From Scyliorhinus canicula (taxonomy: Eukaryota), in NCBI RefSeq assembly GCF_902713615.1, contig NC_052154.1, positions 192,920,948 through 192,984,947 on the forward strand: a DNA stretch of 64,000 nt, given 5' to 3'. The stretch's first letter is position 1. Each line of letters opens with the position of its first letter. Below the pieces are notes generated by a model. That model was not told the origin of the DNA and did not search any database. It saw nothing but the letters and a program-made list of their open reading frames with translations. The position numbers and the translations under genes are program-made. Positions 36,200-60,648 of this stretch are shown here, piece after piece.

Positions 36200-36325
36200 A
36201 TGAGTTTGAAAAATAAATTGATGAATGAGGTGCACGCCGACACTCCAATGAAGGCGAGTTCAAAAGTCTCAATAATCGGTGCTGGACAAGTTGGCATGTC
36301 GTGTGCCATTTCTATCCTACAGCAG
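36200..36325 (+). CDS. LDH-like gene, first coding exon (MSLKNKLMNEVHADTPMKASSKVSIIGAGQVGMSCAISILQQ)
   Basis: ACAATG start, 42 codons as in the LDHA first coding exon, GxGxxG motif, CAG|GTACAG donor. Confidence 0.92.
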
Positions 36326-38014
36326 GTACAGTGTATCAGTTCCATTATTCTGGGCAGCAGTTAAGGTTTTTATTTAACATTTTGTATATGCCAACATGGC
36401 GACCATGAGTTCAAATTCCAAAAGGCAACTCGAGAGTTTGAATTCAATTAATTAAATAATTGTGTAATGGAAAAATACCCAGTTATTTGTAATGATGACA
36501 ATGGATGTCATTAACAAAAACTCCATCTTGTTCCCAATATCCCCAGGGAAAGGAAATCTCTGATCCTTACCTACTCTGGTCTATATGTGACCTCAACTTT
36601 CGACTCCCCTCGTCCATTTAGAGGGGCTGGTTTAGCACAGTGGGCATGTAAAGCACAGCAGGGCCAGCAGCGTGGGTTCAATACCCGTTCCTACCTCCCC
36701 GAACAGGCGCCGGAATGTGACAACTAGGGGCTTTTCACAGTAACTTCATTTGAAGCCTACTTGTGACAATAAGCGATTTTTATTTCAAGAATCTAACTAA
36801 CCCAGCTTTGAATAAAATTGATGACCCAGACTTTGTGATCCACACCAGTGTGGCTGACTCTCAAATTACCATTTGAGACTCATTTGTTCACCTCCACCTT
36901 CTCAATGCTAACTGGCAAATAGAAAATGAAAGACTTGCAGTTCTATAGCGCCCTTCTCAACCCCAGGACATCCCAAAATTCTTCACTGCCAATTCATCCC
37001 TTAGTCCAGTCACTTTCCAATTACGGGGCAATTTAACGGGGCCAATTTACCTAACCTGTGCACCTCTGGGTTGTGGGGGTGAAACCCATGCAAACATGGT
37101 GAGAATATGCAAACTCCACACGGACAGTGACCCAGAGCCGGGATGAAACCCGACCCGGCTAACCACTGTGCCACCATGCTGTCCTCAAATTCTATGGTTC
37201 TCTGAATGATCTACTTTAGTCTCTTATTGATGTGATGCAGGCACTGCTGGCAAATTCAGCATTCATTGCCTGTCCCTTACAACAACACCTTATTTATATA
37301 GCACCTTTAATGCAATAACATATCCCAAGGTGCTTCACAGAAGCATTAAAAAACAAAGTATGCCACGAGCTACATAAGTCAGAGAGATGCAGAAGGGAGA
37401 GCCTGTGGAGGGATTTGAAAACAATTTTAAAATCAAGTCTTTGCTTGACTGGGAGGTGATGTAGGTCAATCACTCAGTGCTATTTATTCTGAGAGGAATA
37501 CTTTTACCTAAACCTCCTCTGCACCATTTTAAAATCGAAAGGGAGTTGGCACAACCATGTGCAGTATCATTCTGCCAATGAGAGTTGGAAATGGCTGTTA
37601 TGTACCCAGTTACTTTACTGGTGTAAAAATCCGAGATCAGAACACCATGAACTGGTGATATCTAAATGTATGGAACTGAACGGGAATGTGCAATTCAACT
37701 TTATCTGTGGCTTCATGGGATATCCATAAGTGACCCTTGAAGACAGACACTTGGACACTCCTGCTCGACAGACAATCTTGTAGACAACTTCGTATGTAGA
37801 CAATATAACTGAGGATATGGCAGACGGAAAATCAAATGTTGGATCAACTGGAATGATAGCATGAACTCAATGGACTAAATGGCCTTCTTCTGTGCTATAA
37901 TGACTCTATGAATATATGTTTCGTATTTTGCTAGAATGTTGGATAATTCTCAAACACCAACCTAAATCCAGTATTTTCCAAATATGACGTATTTTGTATT
38001 ATTTCTCCCTCTAG

Positions 38015-38129
38015 CATATTGCTGATGAATTGGCTCTGGTTGATAGATTGGCAGAGAAACTGAAGGGAGAGGCTCTGGATTTGTTACACGGCAGCCTGTT
38101 TCTAAAATCCAAAATTTCGGCAGACACAG
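38015..38129 (+). CDS. LDH-like coding exon 2 ([38 protein letters not shown])
   Basis: AG/GT, 115 nt, LDH motifs DELALVD and KLKGE..DL.HGSLFL. Confidence 0.95.
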
Positions 38130-38489
38130 GTCAGTGATGGGTCACGGGGTTTTTTTAATGGCATATTTAATGCTGTTGAATTGTTGGAGTGAAAATATAA
38201 TTGGGCGAGATGTTCCTTTGCAAGTCCGCCCAATGGGAATTCCTATTGATCGCACCCCCCCCCCCCCCCCCCCCCCCCCCCCCTCCTCCACGCTGCCAGG
38301 TAACCCAGAGAATCCAATGAATGGCTGGAAACCATTCTTTGCCCCATACTTTTTAAAGCTTACAAATTGCTCTTCTAACATACCCACCGATATATATTAA
38401 GAATCTGTTGTGGAAAAGGAAAACGATGGTCTGCAAAAAAAAAGGTTCTGGATTGGGGGAAGGCAGATTTTATTAAAATGAGGCAGGAT

Positions 38490-39110
38490 CTGGCCCGAGT
38501 GGACTAGGAACAGTTTCTTGTGGGAAAGTCCGGAGGACAGCTAATCTGGTTCCACTTTTCAAGAAGGGTGGTCGAGATAATCCAGGGAATTGCAGACCAG
38601 TGAGTCTCACATCAGTGGGAGGGAAACTATTGGAGAAAATTCTGAAGGAGAAAATTAATCTCCACTTGGAAAGGCGATGTTTGATCAAAGCATAGCTTTG
38701 ACAGAGGGAGGGTATGCCTAACAAATTTGATTGATTTTTTGACAAAATGATCAGGTGTATGGATGGGGATAGTGCAGTTGTATGGATTTCAGCAAAGCCT
38801 TTGACAAGGTCCCACATGGGAGACAGGTAAAGTAGGTAAAAGCACAAGGGATCCAGGGTAATGTGGCAAGTTGGATCCAAAACTGGCTTGGTGGTAGCAG
38901 ACAGAAGGTGGTAGTAGAAGGTTGTTTGTGTGACTGGAGGCCAGTGTCCAGTTATGTACCAGAGGGATCAGTGCGAGGATCCTTATTGTTCATGATGTAT
39001 AAATAATTTGGATGAGAATGTTTGGGGGGTTGAGAAAGTTTGTGGATGACATGAAGATTGGTAGGGTGGTTGCAGAAAGATACAGAAGGGTTGGTCAGAT
39101 GGGAAGAATG
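38490..39110 (+). mobile_element. CR1 LINE RT fragment
   Basis: Decayed RPVSLTS and DFSKAFDKVPH motifs. Confidence 0.8.
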
Positions 39111-58160: not shown

Positions 58161-59385
58161 TTACTGGCCTCGCTGATGAGTCACCAGTCGGGCGCCGTTC
58201 AGTACTTGTCCCAACAAACTTGGAACAGGCAGAACAATACCTATGGGGGGGGGGGGGGAGGAGGTCTCCCAGGCGATCGGAGGCCGGGCATGGTGGCACC
58301 GGTGTCAACCTGGCAGCTTGGCATTGCCAGGGTGCCCAGGTAACACCAAGTTGGCAACACCAAGATGCCAGGATGGTATTTTGGCCGCATCATGGAACAG
58401 GCCCAGAAGTGCCATGCCTGTGTGTGATGGGGTGTGTGGGGACCCGAGGACCCCCCCCCCCCCCCCCCCCCCCCCCAACAGGAGAGTTGGGGCATTGGGG
58501 GTTGGTCCGGTGTTGTGTCGGGGTGGGGGTCAAGAGATCGGGGCGCCACAATCTCTGCCGGGAATGATCCCACTAATCCTGCCCTGAACTGACACTTTTT
58601 GGTTAGAACGTGCCCAATACCTGCCTCCCCTTCTCCATCAGCCTCTTGACTGCTGAAACTCTTGTACATGCCTTTGTGATTACATACTTGACTCACCTAA
58701 ATATCTCCATATTTTGTTTTCTTTTCTTTCAAATCCTCATCATTGGCCTTCATTGGATTCTCATTTCCAAATTTATTACGGTTAAAGTCCACTTTTCAGT
58801 CTTTCAATCCCTTCATGGCCTCACCTACCTTGGTAAGTTTCTTCAATGCAATCAACTCTCAAACATTCTGTTATTCAGAATCCGGCTTTCAATTCATCCA
58901 TCATAAATAACCAGCTCCCCTCCCCACCCTTCCCCACAGTTTTAGCTGCACTGGCCCCTCTTTCTATTTATTTCTCTACCTCTCTCCATCTTTGGAAATC
59001 CATGAATCCATCTTTGTGGGCCAATATTTCCTAATGTATGCTTTCCTGCCTTGATTTCCATTCCAATGCAATTTTTTGTCTCCTTCCTCATTCGCCACCG
59101 AAGCCAAAACTCAAGAATTTGAAAGGAACCCAATAAATATTCTTGCTAATTGAGCTTCCACATTATCATCTATATTCTAAGTTACTCCAATGTTCAGATA
59201 TGAATGAACACATCATTTTCTCAATGATTGTACTTGGATGGAGTTTTAGTATTGACAAAGTATATGAACTTTTATTTGATTAACTTGCTTTCATTCAGCT
59301 TGACTTCAAACAGAGTGGTGCTGTTGTCATTACAAATGCATAAATAAGACTGTAAAGTGAGCAGAGGACACAAATGCCATATTAG

Positions 59386-59713
59386 GCTCTTTCTGTATCT
59401 GGCCGCCATGGGTCATCAGCAGCTTTACTGGTCTCACCCCAGGAAATTCGGTCAGGGCTCCCGCTCATGTGTGAACCGACACGGCCTGATCCAGAAATAC
59501 GGCCTCAACATGTGCCGCCCATGCTTCAGACAATACGCTAAAGACATCGGCTTCGTCAAGCTGGACTAAATTACAAAAGGAGCAAAAGTGCATTCTAATG
59601 CAGTACGAAATGGAAATTTAGCATTTGTCAAAGAATTCTAACCTCCACCTGGAAGAAGCAAACTTTTGTGATGCTCCATTTTTGTAAATAAAATTCAATT
59701 GTCAAAAAACCCC
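59386..59713 (+). pseudogene. RPS29: RPS29 processed pseudogene (ORF 59408-59569, 53 aa)
   Basis: [21 protein letters not shown]...KLD, intronless, 5'TOP CTCTTTC, AATAAA at 59687, short A tail, 15-bp TSD CAAAT(G/T)CCATATTAG at 59371-59385 and 59714-59728; 3-codon deletion removes a zinc-binding Cys. Confidence 0.95.
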
Positions 59714-60524
59714 CAAATTCCATATTAGTTTCCAAGATGGCCACAAACTGCTTCTGTTTTCCATGTATGTTTCTACGTACCTTACAATTTCTTGTCAGTT
59801 GTATATTTGGCTTGCGGTTGACGGAGTAAAAGCGATGCTCTGGGAACCAAGCGACACCAACACCGGAGGGCGGAAGTTCACAGAGAGTAAATCAATATAA
59901 ATGGGGGAGCAGTGCTTCAAAGGATTCACATGAACCAGAAAACAAAATCTAATTTGGGCACTAAGGTATATTATGGGGATAGTAGTGCGTGAAGGTGAAG
60001 TTGAGGTCACAGGTCAGCCAAGATCTTATTGAATAGCAGAGCAGGCTAGAAGGGCCACATAGAATTTACAGTTCAGAAGGAGGCCATTCGGCCCATCGAG
60101 TCTGCACCGGCTCTTGGAAAGAGCACCCTACTTCAGCCCACGCCTACCACCCTATCCCGGTAACCTCAGCAAACCTTTTTGGACACTAAGGGCAATTTAT
60201 CATAGCCAATCCACCTAACCTGCACATGGCACACTCCTGTTCCCAGTTCCTATGTTAAAATGTTTTTATGCTGAAAGTGGTTTGTCCGTGAACTGAACCT
60301 ACCGATTCTACCTATAAAATCATTCAGCTTGACTTCAATCACCAATATACCTATAAAATCACCAAACTCTTTAATATTCATATTGCTGTTTGTAAATGTT
60401 CCCCTTTTATGTAAAACACAGGTGTCTGTTAGCATGTGACTCATTAACTAACAGTAGTGTGATGTGGAATTACATTTTACAGTAAAACTTTGGTTTTAAT
60501 GACTGTTATTTTTTTAAACTATAG

Positions 60525-60648
60525 CACCCATGATGTTATAAAGCTGAAAGGATACACTTCTTGGGCCATTGGTTTAAGCGTGGCCAATATTGTCAACGCA
60601 ATTTTGAAAAATATCAGATCCATCCACCTGGTGTCGGTCAATGCAAAA
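60525..60648 (+). CDS. LDH-like coding exon 6 ([42 protein letters not shown])
   Basis: AG/GT, 124 nt, [15 protein letters not shown] signature; final exon not found in the window. Confidence 0.96.

Follow-up and report, generated by a model that had tools for sequence, protein, structure and literature searches.

A candidate lactate dehydrogenase pseudoenzyme in cartilaginous fishes from a third vertebrate LDH lineage

Introduction

Lactate dehydrogenase (LDH) is a standard example of how isozymes evolve. In a catalytically competent L-LDH, His193 and Asp166 form the proton-relay dyad, Arg106 of the mobile loop and Asn138 polarise the substrate carbonyl, and Arg169 and Thr248 bind the substrate carboxylate. 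An LDH-like domain is also carried by UEVLD (UEV3; PDB 2i6t/3dl2), for which LDH activity is not known. In UEVLD this domain is fused to a UEV domain at the N-terminus (PMC12513931). Recent reviews continue to list three LDH genes in vertebrates, namely A, B and C (PMC10583557, PMC12997371). From the data presented here there appears to be a further ancient lineage outside the A/B/C nomenclature. Its members in cyclostomes and in bony fishes other than tetrapods look active, and those in sharks, rays and chimaeras appear to be dead enzymes that have been conserved. The gene described here lies in the window, the 64,000-nucleotide stretch of Scyliorhinus canicula DNA that was analysed; no paper describing the shark LDH-like protein was found in the literature searched, the coverage of which was incomplete.

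The window gene belongs to a family that has seven coding exons and intron phases in common with LDH-A/B, and it keeps the N-terminal arm, GxGxxG, Asp52, Asp166 and Arg169. It differs from LDH-A/B in having Gln193, in the loss of Arg106, Asn138 and Tyr239, in a degenerate mobile loop, in a four-residue deletion in the 210s loop and in its phylogenetic position outside both groups. The fold is predicted to be that of LDH-A/B/C: an AlphaFold model of the Carcharodon ortholog (pLDDT 90.2) has a TM score of 0.93 to LDH-A and 49-51% identity to the LDH-A/B/C structures. The likeness to UEVLD is that of an LDH-fold domain in a vertebrate protein, and as a dead LDH module UEVLD would be the nearest functional analogy. 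The shark gene differs from it in being stand-alone, in its neighbourhood and in being less like 2i6t than ordinary LDHs are.

Results

Features of the window are listed with coordinates, strand and evidence.

9877..10113, - strand: ankyrin-repeat exon of a ZDHHC13/17-type palmitoyltransferase gene, the head-to-head neighbour (Pfam Ank families)
35435..35465, + strand: 3' part of an upstream non-coding exon (single RNA contig, run X10)
36162..36325, + strand: first coding exon, with the N-terminal arm and GAGQVG (GxGxxG) (RNA contigs, Pfam Ldh_1_N)
38015..38129, + strand: coding exon 2, 115 nt, Asp52 (LVD) (junction with exon 1 in 4/4 runs; Pfam Ldh_1_N)
45073..45246, + strand: coding exon 3, 174 nt, Arg99 and degenerate active-site loop (Pfam Ldh_1_N, 7e-10; contig continuation from exon 2)
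45144-45146, + strand: AAA, Lys at the Arg106 site, exon 3 (in frame)
45240-45242, + strand: ATT, Ile at the Asn138 site, exon 3 (in frame)
48227..48400, + strand: coding exon 4, 174 nt, Asp166, Arg169 and GEQGD (gapless alignment to LDH-A 2v65; exon words in RNA runs)
48385-48387, + strand: CAA, Gln at the catalytic His193 site, exon 4 (in frame)
50873..50978, + strand: coding exon 5, 106 nt, four codons shorter than in active LDHs (homology)
60525..60648, + strand: coding exon 6, 124 nt, Thr248 (GYTSWA) and Tyr239 replaced by His; final exon within the window (Pfam Ldh_1_C, weak)

The original prediction described six exons of 126/115/174/174/106/124 nt with GT-AG splicing, LDH intron phases and 273 open codons, and all of this was confirmed when the window was spliced in Python and compared with gar exons. 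Each internal boundary follows the order AG, exon, GT, and the spliced product is 819 nt without a stop codon. In gar, both LDH-A and its paralog consist of exons of 129/118/174/174/118/124/165 nt; the window gene has its introns at identical positions and in identical phases, and its exon lengths differ by -3, -3 and -12, so that all differences are in frame, as had been claimed. The 106-nt exon 5 is also present in Heptranchias and Callorhinchus (118 nt in both gar genes). The CAA, AAA and ATT codons lie at the predicted positions, and the window protein does keep GxGxxG, Asp52, Arg99, Asp166, Arg169, Thr248 and the N-terminal arm. Pfam assigns Ldh_1_N to exons 1-4, and it assigns Ldh_1_C to exons 4 and 6; by these domains, GxGxxG, Asp52 and the AlphaFold model of the ortholog, the protein belongs by fold to the LDH-MDH superfamily. 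Exon 4 aligned without gaps to residues 140-196 of LDH-A 2v65, GEHGD being replaced by GEQGD.

Both ends of the predicted gene model had to be amended. The first coding exon starts not at the ATG but at about 36162, after a short non-coding exon, and comprises a 5' UTR (36162-36199) with an in-frame TAG (36176-36178), followed by the ATG at 36200. Contigs of three runs start matching at 36159-36162, right behind the acceptor cag (36159-36161). In the contig of run X10, 70 letters precede window position 36162, the final 30 of which match 35435..35465 save one A in a poly-A run; a GTAAGT is found at 35464, and the contig junction falls 2 nt beyond it. The contig of run X1 carries another leader of 28 nt, unlike that of run X10. 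At the 3' end the window model is incomplete: orthologs have a seventh exon of 165-174 nt, and this last exon (FLSxPC...) was not found in 60649-64000.

The window gene is transcribed and its 5' part is spliced. The exon 1-2 junction (36325/38015, GT..AG) was present in RNA contigs of four of four runs, and a contig that continues past 38129 does so with ATTTTCTAGTTACAG..., where exon 3 begins. RNA depth was zero in the non-repeat intron, and RNA contigs were 2780 and 3734 nt long. Words of exon 4 occurred in at least 14 RNA runs (share 0.75). The label of the runs, 'RNA?', is a guess. In S. canicula, reads confirm the first third of the transcript from its 5' end, and the support for exons 3-6 comes from homology, the presence of exon words and the lengths of the contigs.

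Intact orthologs of 326-330 aa with Ldh domains only were recovered from four sharks, four rays and the chimaera Callorhinchus, by a region-restricted search whose query was the 219-aa open reading frame ending within exon 4. They have a common seven-exon structure (Chiloscyllium exon 6, which falls in an N run, was left out of the exon comparison), the same neighbours and an intact last exon. The six coding exons in the window are the first six of a gene for a predicted stand-alone LDH-fold protein of about 327 aa, orthologous across Chondrichthyes. It is under selective constraint, with dN/dS of 0.06-0.10 against Chiloscyllium and 0.26-0.37 against Heptranchias. An ESM Atlas search with exon 4 returned generic Ldh_1_C fragments only, and a representative-library search with the same exon returned mostly fragments and no close relative, adding one teleost LDH-B sequence.

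The original prediction described the gene as an LDH paralog and compared it with LDHA. It is of the LDH family, but phylogenetic analysis placed it in a third lineage: together with fish and cyclostome sequences it forms one clade (support 99/98), and an AU test rejects its grouping with LDH-A (p 3.4e-5) as well as with LDH-B (p 2.0e-5). An LDH-A offshoot or tandem duplicate is ruled out by the first of these values; Carcharodon has a separate 333-aa LDH-A (P0425). LDH-B orthology is ruled out by the second and by the LDH-B clade of tetrapod, gar and teleost sequences (100/99), outside which the window group falls. Third-lineage genes with all catalytic residues were found in coelacanth, bichir, sturgeon, gar, bowfin, basal teleosts and cyclostomes, where the lineage evolved some four to five times more slowly than on the chondrichthyan branch (path length from the shared node about 0.22 in gar versus about 1.0 in Carcharodon). 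Only the chondrichthyan branch is catalytically degenerate, and the lineage looks fully active in many bony fishes.

Gene order agrees with the tree. The ankyrin exon at 9877..10113 matches the ankyrin domain of ZDHHC17/HIP14 (80 bits), and Carcharodon, Heterodontus, Callorhinchus and gar each have an Ank+DHHC gene upstream in opposite orientation, so that the gar member has the same head-to-head neighbour as the window gene. The other neighbour of the LDH-like gene is a PRDM zinc-finger gene. In several species the third-lineage gene and LDH-A are on one chromosome or scaffold. Both its clade and its position next to the Ank-DHHC gene place the window gene in a third, ancient L-LDH lineage of vertebrates, of which it is the representative in cartilaginous fishes.

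The residues R106, N138, D166, R169, H193 and T248 are kept in 49 other LDHs from bacteria to vertebrates, bar one bird sequence. In the window protein, neither the His193-Asp166 dyad nor the Arg106/Asn138 pair is complete. The His193 site is Gln in 10/10 elasmobranch sequences, always as codon CAA, and Asp166 is kept. Callorhinchus keeps His193 but has lost Arg169 (Leu) and Thr248 (Ala), so no single inactivating change is common to the whole chondrichthyan clade. At the Arg106 site sharks have Lys, rays Asp and the chimaera Leu (Arg in 0/10 sequences), and the Asn138 site, changed in 9/10 sequences, reads I/N/T/H/Q/S, so the Ile of the window is a species-level state. The conservation of Gln, Lys and Ile that the original prediction proposed to look for in other chondrichthyans thus holds for Gln in all elasmobranchs; Lys is confined to sharks. 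Aligned across the clade, Gln193 is the sole catalytic-site change fixed in elasmobranchs.

Elsewhere in the active site, Arg169 is kept in all elasmobranchs, and Thr248 is kept in sharks and Rhinoraja, with Ile in its place in three rays. Mobula and Narcine have lost Arg99, and Tyr239 is lost in all chondrichthyan members. GxGxxG (GAGQVG) and Asp52 are kept throughout. Every chondrichthyan member keeps 41 of the 77 columns that show no variation among 47 active animal LDHs; losses are concentrated in loop 100-113, which is mostly changed, and at S138/N139, H194, D196, A239/Y240 and T249.

Discussion

The original prediction took the locus to be a maintained gene and would have yielded to a pseudogene if there were no transcript, a dN/dS near 1 or a broken last exon. 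The loss of catalytic residues, the long branch in the tree and the absence of the final exon from the window are features that a unitary pseudogene in decay, or an LDH-A duplicate wrongly annotated as a gene, would show. Such a reading is nevertheless very improbable: the six exons have canonical splice sites and neither stops nor frameshifts in 273 codons, spliced transcripts exist, intact frames occur in nine other species spanning Chondrichthyes with synteny and exon structure kept, and dN/dS between sharks (0.06-0.37) is far under 1. As to the last exon, it is intact in the orthologs, but that of S. canicula lies outside the window. We considered with as little credence that the gene is orthologous to UEVLD, the UEV exons either having been lost in the shark or being located further upstream. 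The window protein does have the motifs VIGIG and GEQG, and we take the LDH-like domain of UEVLD to have Gln at the position of the catalytic His, which was counted in favour. However, the in-frame TAG at 36176-36178, between the exon 1 acceptor and the ATG, lies inside the mRNA, so no upstream ORF can read through, and a motif scan of the 36 kb upstream in all six frames found no UEV motif. The neighbours are the Ank-DHHC and PRDM zinc-finger genes and not TSG101, which UEVLD presumably adjoins in human; gar TSG101 adjoins LDH-A, 9.7 Mb from the third-lineage gene. The human UEVLD LDH domain (2i6t) scores 240.9 bits with gar LDH-A, 223.7 with the gar ortholog and below 178 with the Carcharodon protein, against 331-367 bits for vertebrate LDHs (similarity by PDB bit scores; the tree was built without UEVLD), and the chimaera ortholog has His. 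The comparison with UEVLD that had been suggested therefore separates the two: the shark protein has no UEV domain in its frame and is not closer to UEVLD than to LDHs.

A third alternative is a repurposed oxidoreductase that is still catalytic, whether slow, acting on another 2-oxo or 2-hydroxy acid, or using another acid/base residue. Sharks keep Arg99, Asp166, Arg169, Thr248 and the NAD motif, so weak or altered activity is possible; an omega of 0.06-0.10 between some sharks indicates strong selection, and Gln193 is strictly CAA, without drift. Against this, the mobile loop, which folds over the substrate, has degenerated and varies among species, with K/D/L at the Arg106 site; Asn138 varies among six residues, Arg99 is gone from Mobula and Narcine, Tyr239 from all members and Thr248 from three rays; and no compensating conserved residue was seen in the clade. 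The chimaera has lost Arg169, so there would be no common substrate site across the clade. On balance we regard continued catalysis as unlikely. The catalytic machinery has decayed and the fold is under purifying selection, which makes a pseudoenzyme the most likely state; lost residues, selection and expression are together what defines one operationally. The window gene thus probably encodes a stand-alone third-lineage LDH pseudoenzyme, one that would form tetramers and bind NAD(H) and would have no useful pyruvate/lactate turnover. The data show the gene structure, transcription and splicing in the 5' part, orthology, the missing catalytic residues and the selective constraint; that the shark protein is inactive, binds NAD(H), forms oligomers or has a regulatory role is inferred. 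More tentatively, it may be a chondrichthyan pseudoenzyme dating to the chimaera-elasmobranch split and independent of UEVLD, a non-catalytic subunit binding NAD(H) or lactate/pyruvate that could regulate LDH-A/B by co-assembly or sense redox state or metabolites. Activity-stained isozyme gels would, if so, have missed it.

The pseudoenzyme probably arose as follows. The third-lineage gene is kept catalytically complete in bony fishes and cyclostomes. His193 became Gln (CAC to CAA, one transversion) before the shark-ray split; the original expectation that orthologs lack His holds for the other elasmobranchs, all of which have Gln, but not for the chimaera. In cartilaginous fishes Arg106, Asn138, Tyr239 and much of the mobile loop were lost, and purifying selection has held the Rossmann NAD-binding core, the Asp166/Arg169 region, the N-terminal arm and the overall fold.

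The lineage would offer a natural experiment in the conversion of a core glycolytic enzyme to a pseudoenzyme, with active and inactive orthologs available for direct comparison. The single transversion from His to Gln is a clean, datable change, to which UEVLD would provide a parallel case; the change to Gln in UEVLD and in the shark gene would be convergent.

Third-lineage members are labelled 'LDH A chain-like' or 'LDH B chain(-like)' in databases (Latimeria, Erpetoichthys, Acipenser, Polyodon, Lepisosteus, Amia, Anguilla, Megalops, Chanos, Lethenteron and hagfishes), and the names 'LDH A chain-like' and 'LDH B chain-like' should be read with caution.

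Structure and transcription of the LDH-like gene

The LDH-like gene of the window is carried on the forward strand and has six coding exons there:

36200-36325, +, coding exon 1 (from the ATG), 126 nt
38015-38129, +, coding exon 2, 115 nt
45073-45246, +, coding exon 3, 174 nt
48227-48400, +, coding exon 4, 174 nt
50873-50978, +, coding exon 5, 106 nt
60525-60648, +, coding exon 6, 124 nt

The original prediction described six LDH exons with GT-AG borders, 273 open codons and in-frame length changes, and this description held when sizes and boundaries were recomputed and compared with the exons of gar (Lepisosteus). 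Every internal boundary reads AG|exon|GT, and the 819-nt spliced product gives 273 codons free of stops. In gar, LDH-A and the LDH paralog discussed below both have coding exons of 129/118/174/174/118/124/165 nt. Intron positions and phases of the window gene are therefore those of LDH genes; the sole size differences are in-frame losses of one, one and four codons. Pfam assigned Ldh_1_N to exons 1-4 and Ldh_1_C to exons 4 and 6. Exon 4 aligned without gaps to residues 140-196 of icefish LDH-A (structure 2v65), with NLDSARFR kept as DLDTARFR and GEHGD replaced by GEQGD. The triplets predicted to replace His193 (CAA, 48385-48387), Arg106 (AAA, 45144-45146) and Asn138 (ATT, 45240-45242) were found in place, all in frame. 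No seventh exon was found in 60649-64000, and the gene model lacks its 3' end; in orthologs this exon is 165-174 nt long and lies several kb further on.

The gene is transcribed and spliced. Words of exon 4 occurred in numerous RNA runs carrying the same species label and in two runs with a second label. When contigs from four runs were placed on 35900-38200, their depth covered exons 1 and 2 and was limited in the intron to a few short stretches, mostly with the implausibly high values typical of repeats. Spliced contigs joined 36325 to 38015 with GT..AG ends in all four runs; contigs carrying exons 1-2 included ones of 2780 and 3734 nt, and one contig left exon 2 into letters equal to the first ones of exon 3. 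For exons 3-6 the junctions rest on homology. The transcribed first coding exon begins at about 36162, behind an acceptor cag at 36159-36161, and an in-frame TAG (36176-36178) lies between this start and the ATG. One contig, from RNA run X10, extended 70 letters further upstream, and the final 30 of these match 35435-35465 and so belong to a short non-coding leader exon. Window and contig disagree by a single A in a poly-A run of this leader, the contig junction falls 2 nt beyond a GTAAGT, and run X1 carries a different 28-nt leader. The gene may have alternative first exons or alternative donors.

A third LDH lineage

The best matches outside the chondrichthyans were proteins of 332-334 aa rather than ordinary LDH-A or LDH-B (54-60% identity, compared with 50-53% to ordinary LDHs). 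Such proteins occur in coelacanth, bichir, sturgeon, paddlefish, gar, bowfin, osteoglossomorphs, elopomorphs and Chanos. One teleost LDH-B shared 79% identity with python LDH-B but no more than 67% with the gar member of this set, and alligator gar has a separate LDH-B as well. Maximum-likelihood trees (LG+C20+F+G4, 59 rows) united the chondrichthyan proteins with the fish set and with one protein each from lamprey and hagfish in a single clade, at 99/98 support. LDH-B formed a clade of its own (100/99), and the LDH-A sequences likewise fell outside. Placing the chondrichthyan group with LDH-B or with LDH-A was rejected by the AU test (p = 2.0e-5 and 3.4e-5, respectively). The closest relatives of the window gene are the members of this third lineage in fishes and cyclostomes, which look active. 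No tetrapod appeared among the best 120 matches of the gar protein, suggesting that the lineage may have been lost in tetrapods and most teleosts.

The hagfish member of the third lineage in the tree is a 341-aa LDH (Eptatretus Q71BG3, Myxine 'A chain-like'), and the lamprey member is named 'B chain-like'. The remaining LDHs of lamprey and hagfish fell outside the lineage, beside LDH-A and LDH-B sequences without resolution. The 'A/B' names used for hagfish in the literature may not correspond to gnathostome A and B.

The upstream neighbour is shared by sharks, chimaera and gar. In Carcharodon, Heterodontus and Callorhinchus the upstream neighbour is an ankyrin-repeat DHHC palmitoyltransferase gene and the downstream neighbour a PRDM-type zinc-finger gene, both on the opposite strand; the PRDM-type gene also adjoins the ortholog in Chiloscyllium and Heptranchias. 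The window itself contains one exon of the upstream type:

9877-10113, -, ankyrin exon, ZDHHC13/17 type

In gar, the third-lineage gene and an Ank+DHHC gene stand head to head, in exactly the shark arrangement. Gar LDH-A is on that chromosome too, at a distance of 9.7 Mb, and adjoins a UEV/Vps23 gene (TSG101). Co-location of the two LDH genes was also seen, as judged from equal-sized contigs, in coelacanth, bowfin, Megalops, Carcharodon and Callorhinchus. This sharing of a chromosome suggests that the third lineage and LDH-A arose by an old intrachromosomal duplication and are not a genome-duplication pair.

Orthologs and selection

A region-restricted search recovered orthologs from sharks (Heterodontus, Carcharodon, Pristiophorus, Heptranchias and, as a partial model, Chiloscyllium), rays (Pristis, Rhinoraja, Mobula, Narcine) and the chimaera Callorhinchus. 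The proteins are 327 aa long (330 in Heptranchias, 326 in Callorhinchus) and are named 'L-lactate dehydrogenase A chain-like' or 'B chain-like'; that of Carcharodon is 93% identical to the window protein. Coding exons rebuilt from the loci measured 126/115/174/174/106/124/174 nt in Heptranchias and 129/115/168/174/106/124/165 nt in Callorhinchus, so the exon structure is that of the window gene. At the Chiloscyllium punctatum locus a 13-kb run of N (29342-42447) covers the expected site of exon 6, which accounts for the database model being cut off at 242 aa; this gap was kept unfilled.

dN/dS between pairs of sharks
Window and Chiloscyllium, 231 codons: 0.06-0.10
Window and Heptranchias, 273 codons: 0.26-0.37
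Chiloscyllium and Heptranchias, 231 codons: 0.13-0.20

A ratio near 1 had been named as the mark of a pseudogene. The values of 0.06-0.37 rule that reading out, and by this measure the gene is under purifying selection.

Catalytic decay and its interpretation

Arg106, Asn138, Asp166, Arg169, His193 and Thr248 are kept in 49 comparison LDHs from Bacillus to vertebrates, with one bird exception.

Residues in chondrichthyan members
His193: Gln in 10/10 elasmobranch sequences; His in Callorhinchus
Arg106: Lys in sharks; Asp in rays; Leu in Callorhinchus
Asn138: I, N, T, H, Q or S across the group
Arg169: kept in elasmobranchs; Leu in Callorhinchus
Thr248: kept in sharks and one ray (Rhinoraja); Ile in three rays; Ala in Callorhinchus
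Arg99: absent in Mobula and Narcine

Conservation of Gln, Lys and Ile had been proposed as a check. Gln is shared by the elasmobranchs, none of which retains His, but the chimaera does; Lys is confined to sharks, and Ile is not conserved. The Gln193 codon is CAA in the three sharks for which DNA was at hand, one transversion from the CAC of Callorhinchus. A set of 77 alignment columns is invariant across 47 active animal LDHs; 41 of them are intact throughout the chondrichthyan group, and the other 36 are concentrated in the mobile loop (100-113) and at S138/N139, H194, D196, A239/Y240 and T249. The group retains GxGxxG, Asp52, PVD, the GxG before Asp166, the Trp and Gly pillars and the C-terminal FLSLPC block. 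Measured from its common node with the bony-fish members, Carcharodon is about 1.0 substitutions per site away and gar about 0.22. The AlphaFold model of the Carcharodon ortholog was of high confidence (pLDDT 90.2) and superimposed on LDH-A, LDH-B and LDH-C structures with a TM-score of 0.93; confidence was lower in the N-terminal linker, the active-site loop and the shortened 210s loop.

Judged from these substitutions, the catalytic apparatus of the chondrichthyan protein is freed from selection while the fold and dinucleotide-binding core are not, which is the signature of a pseudoenzyme. The product is most likely an LDH-shaped subunit that would retain NAD(H) binding without substrate turnover. 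The shark protein may also bind carboxylates through Arg169 and Thr248. Since the chimaera keeps His and has lost Arg169, the NAD site is the only ligand-site feature, Asp166 aside, common to the whole clade. Retention of the N-terminal arm suggests that the protein could still form tetramers. Candidate roles would include mixing with LDH-A/B subunits, redox or metabolite sensing, or some other function. The main rival to a subunit without turnover is a protein of weak or altered catalytic activity.

UEVLD also has Gln at the catalytic His position. Identity with UEVLD was rejected because the in-frame stop lies inside the mRNA, so that no upstream ORF can be fused, and because the neighbours differ (Ank-DHHC and PRDM genes here; in gar, TSG101 is beside LDH-A instead). 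No UEV motif was found in the 36 kb upstream. Compared by bit score rather than by tree, the human UEVLD LDH domain (2i6t) gave 240.9 with gar LDH-A and 223.7 with the third-lineage ortholog of gar; the shark protein fell below its 60 best matches (<178 bits). On sequence grounds, then, the window gene is a stand-alone gene and not UEVLD, whose LDH-like domain is the closest analogy, by convergence rather than descent.

Public databases already list proteins of the third lineage, chondrichthyan ones included, with automatically assigned names of the LDH-A-like or LDH-B-like kind. No paper on them was found in the literature searched, and recent reviews still give A, B and C as the sole LDH genes (PMC10583557, PMC12997371). 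The lineage apparently has no name of its own.

Other elements in the window

5470-7043, +, LINE-type reverse-transcriptase fragment (RVT_1)
10908-11621, -, LINE-type reverse-transcriptase fragment (RVT_1)
24000-28000, GC-rich stretch (GC 0.51, strong negative GC skew)
27968-30666, +, hAT-type transposase-like element (DUF4371, 5e-16; hAT dimerisation domain, 4e-5)
52000-57000, GC-rich stretch (GC 0.59, strong negative GC skew)
59348-59566, +, intronless RPS29 copy inside intron 5 (Pfam Ribosomal_S14, 1.7e-6)

The RPS29 copy, which appears a few residues short of RPS29, is probably a processed retrocopy. The hAT-like element has several long open frames; the palmitoyltransferase gene lies on one side of it and the LDH-like gene on the other. 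One of the two RVT_1 fragments is followed by an ALKBH8_N-like segment. The GC-rich stretches contain proline-rich low-complexity tandem repeats, with PSKPSSINPL units near 26000-26700, and are probably repeat arrays rather than genes. SINE-like repeats occur throughout the introns with huge RNA contig depth, for example at 36670-36823 and 37055-37208.
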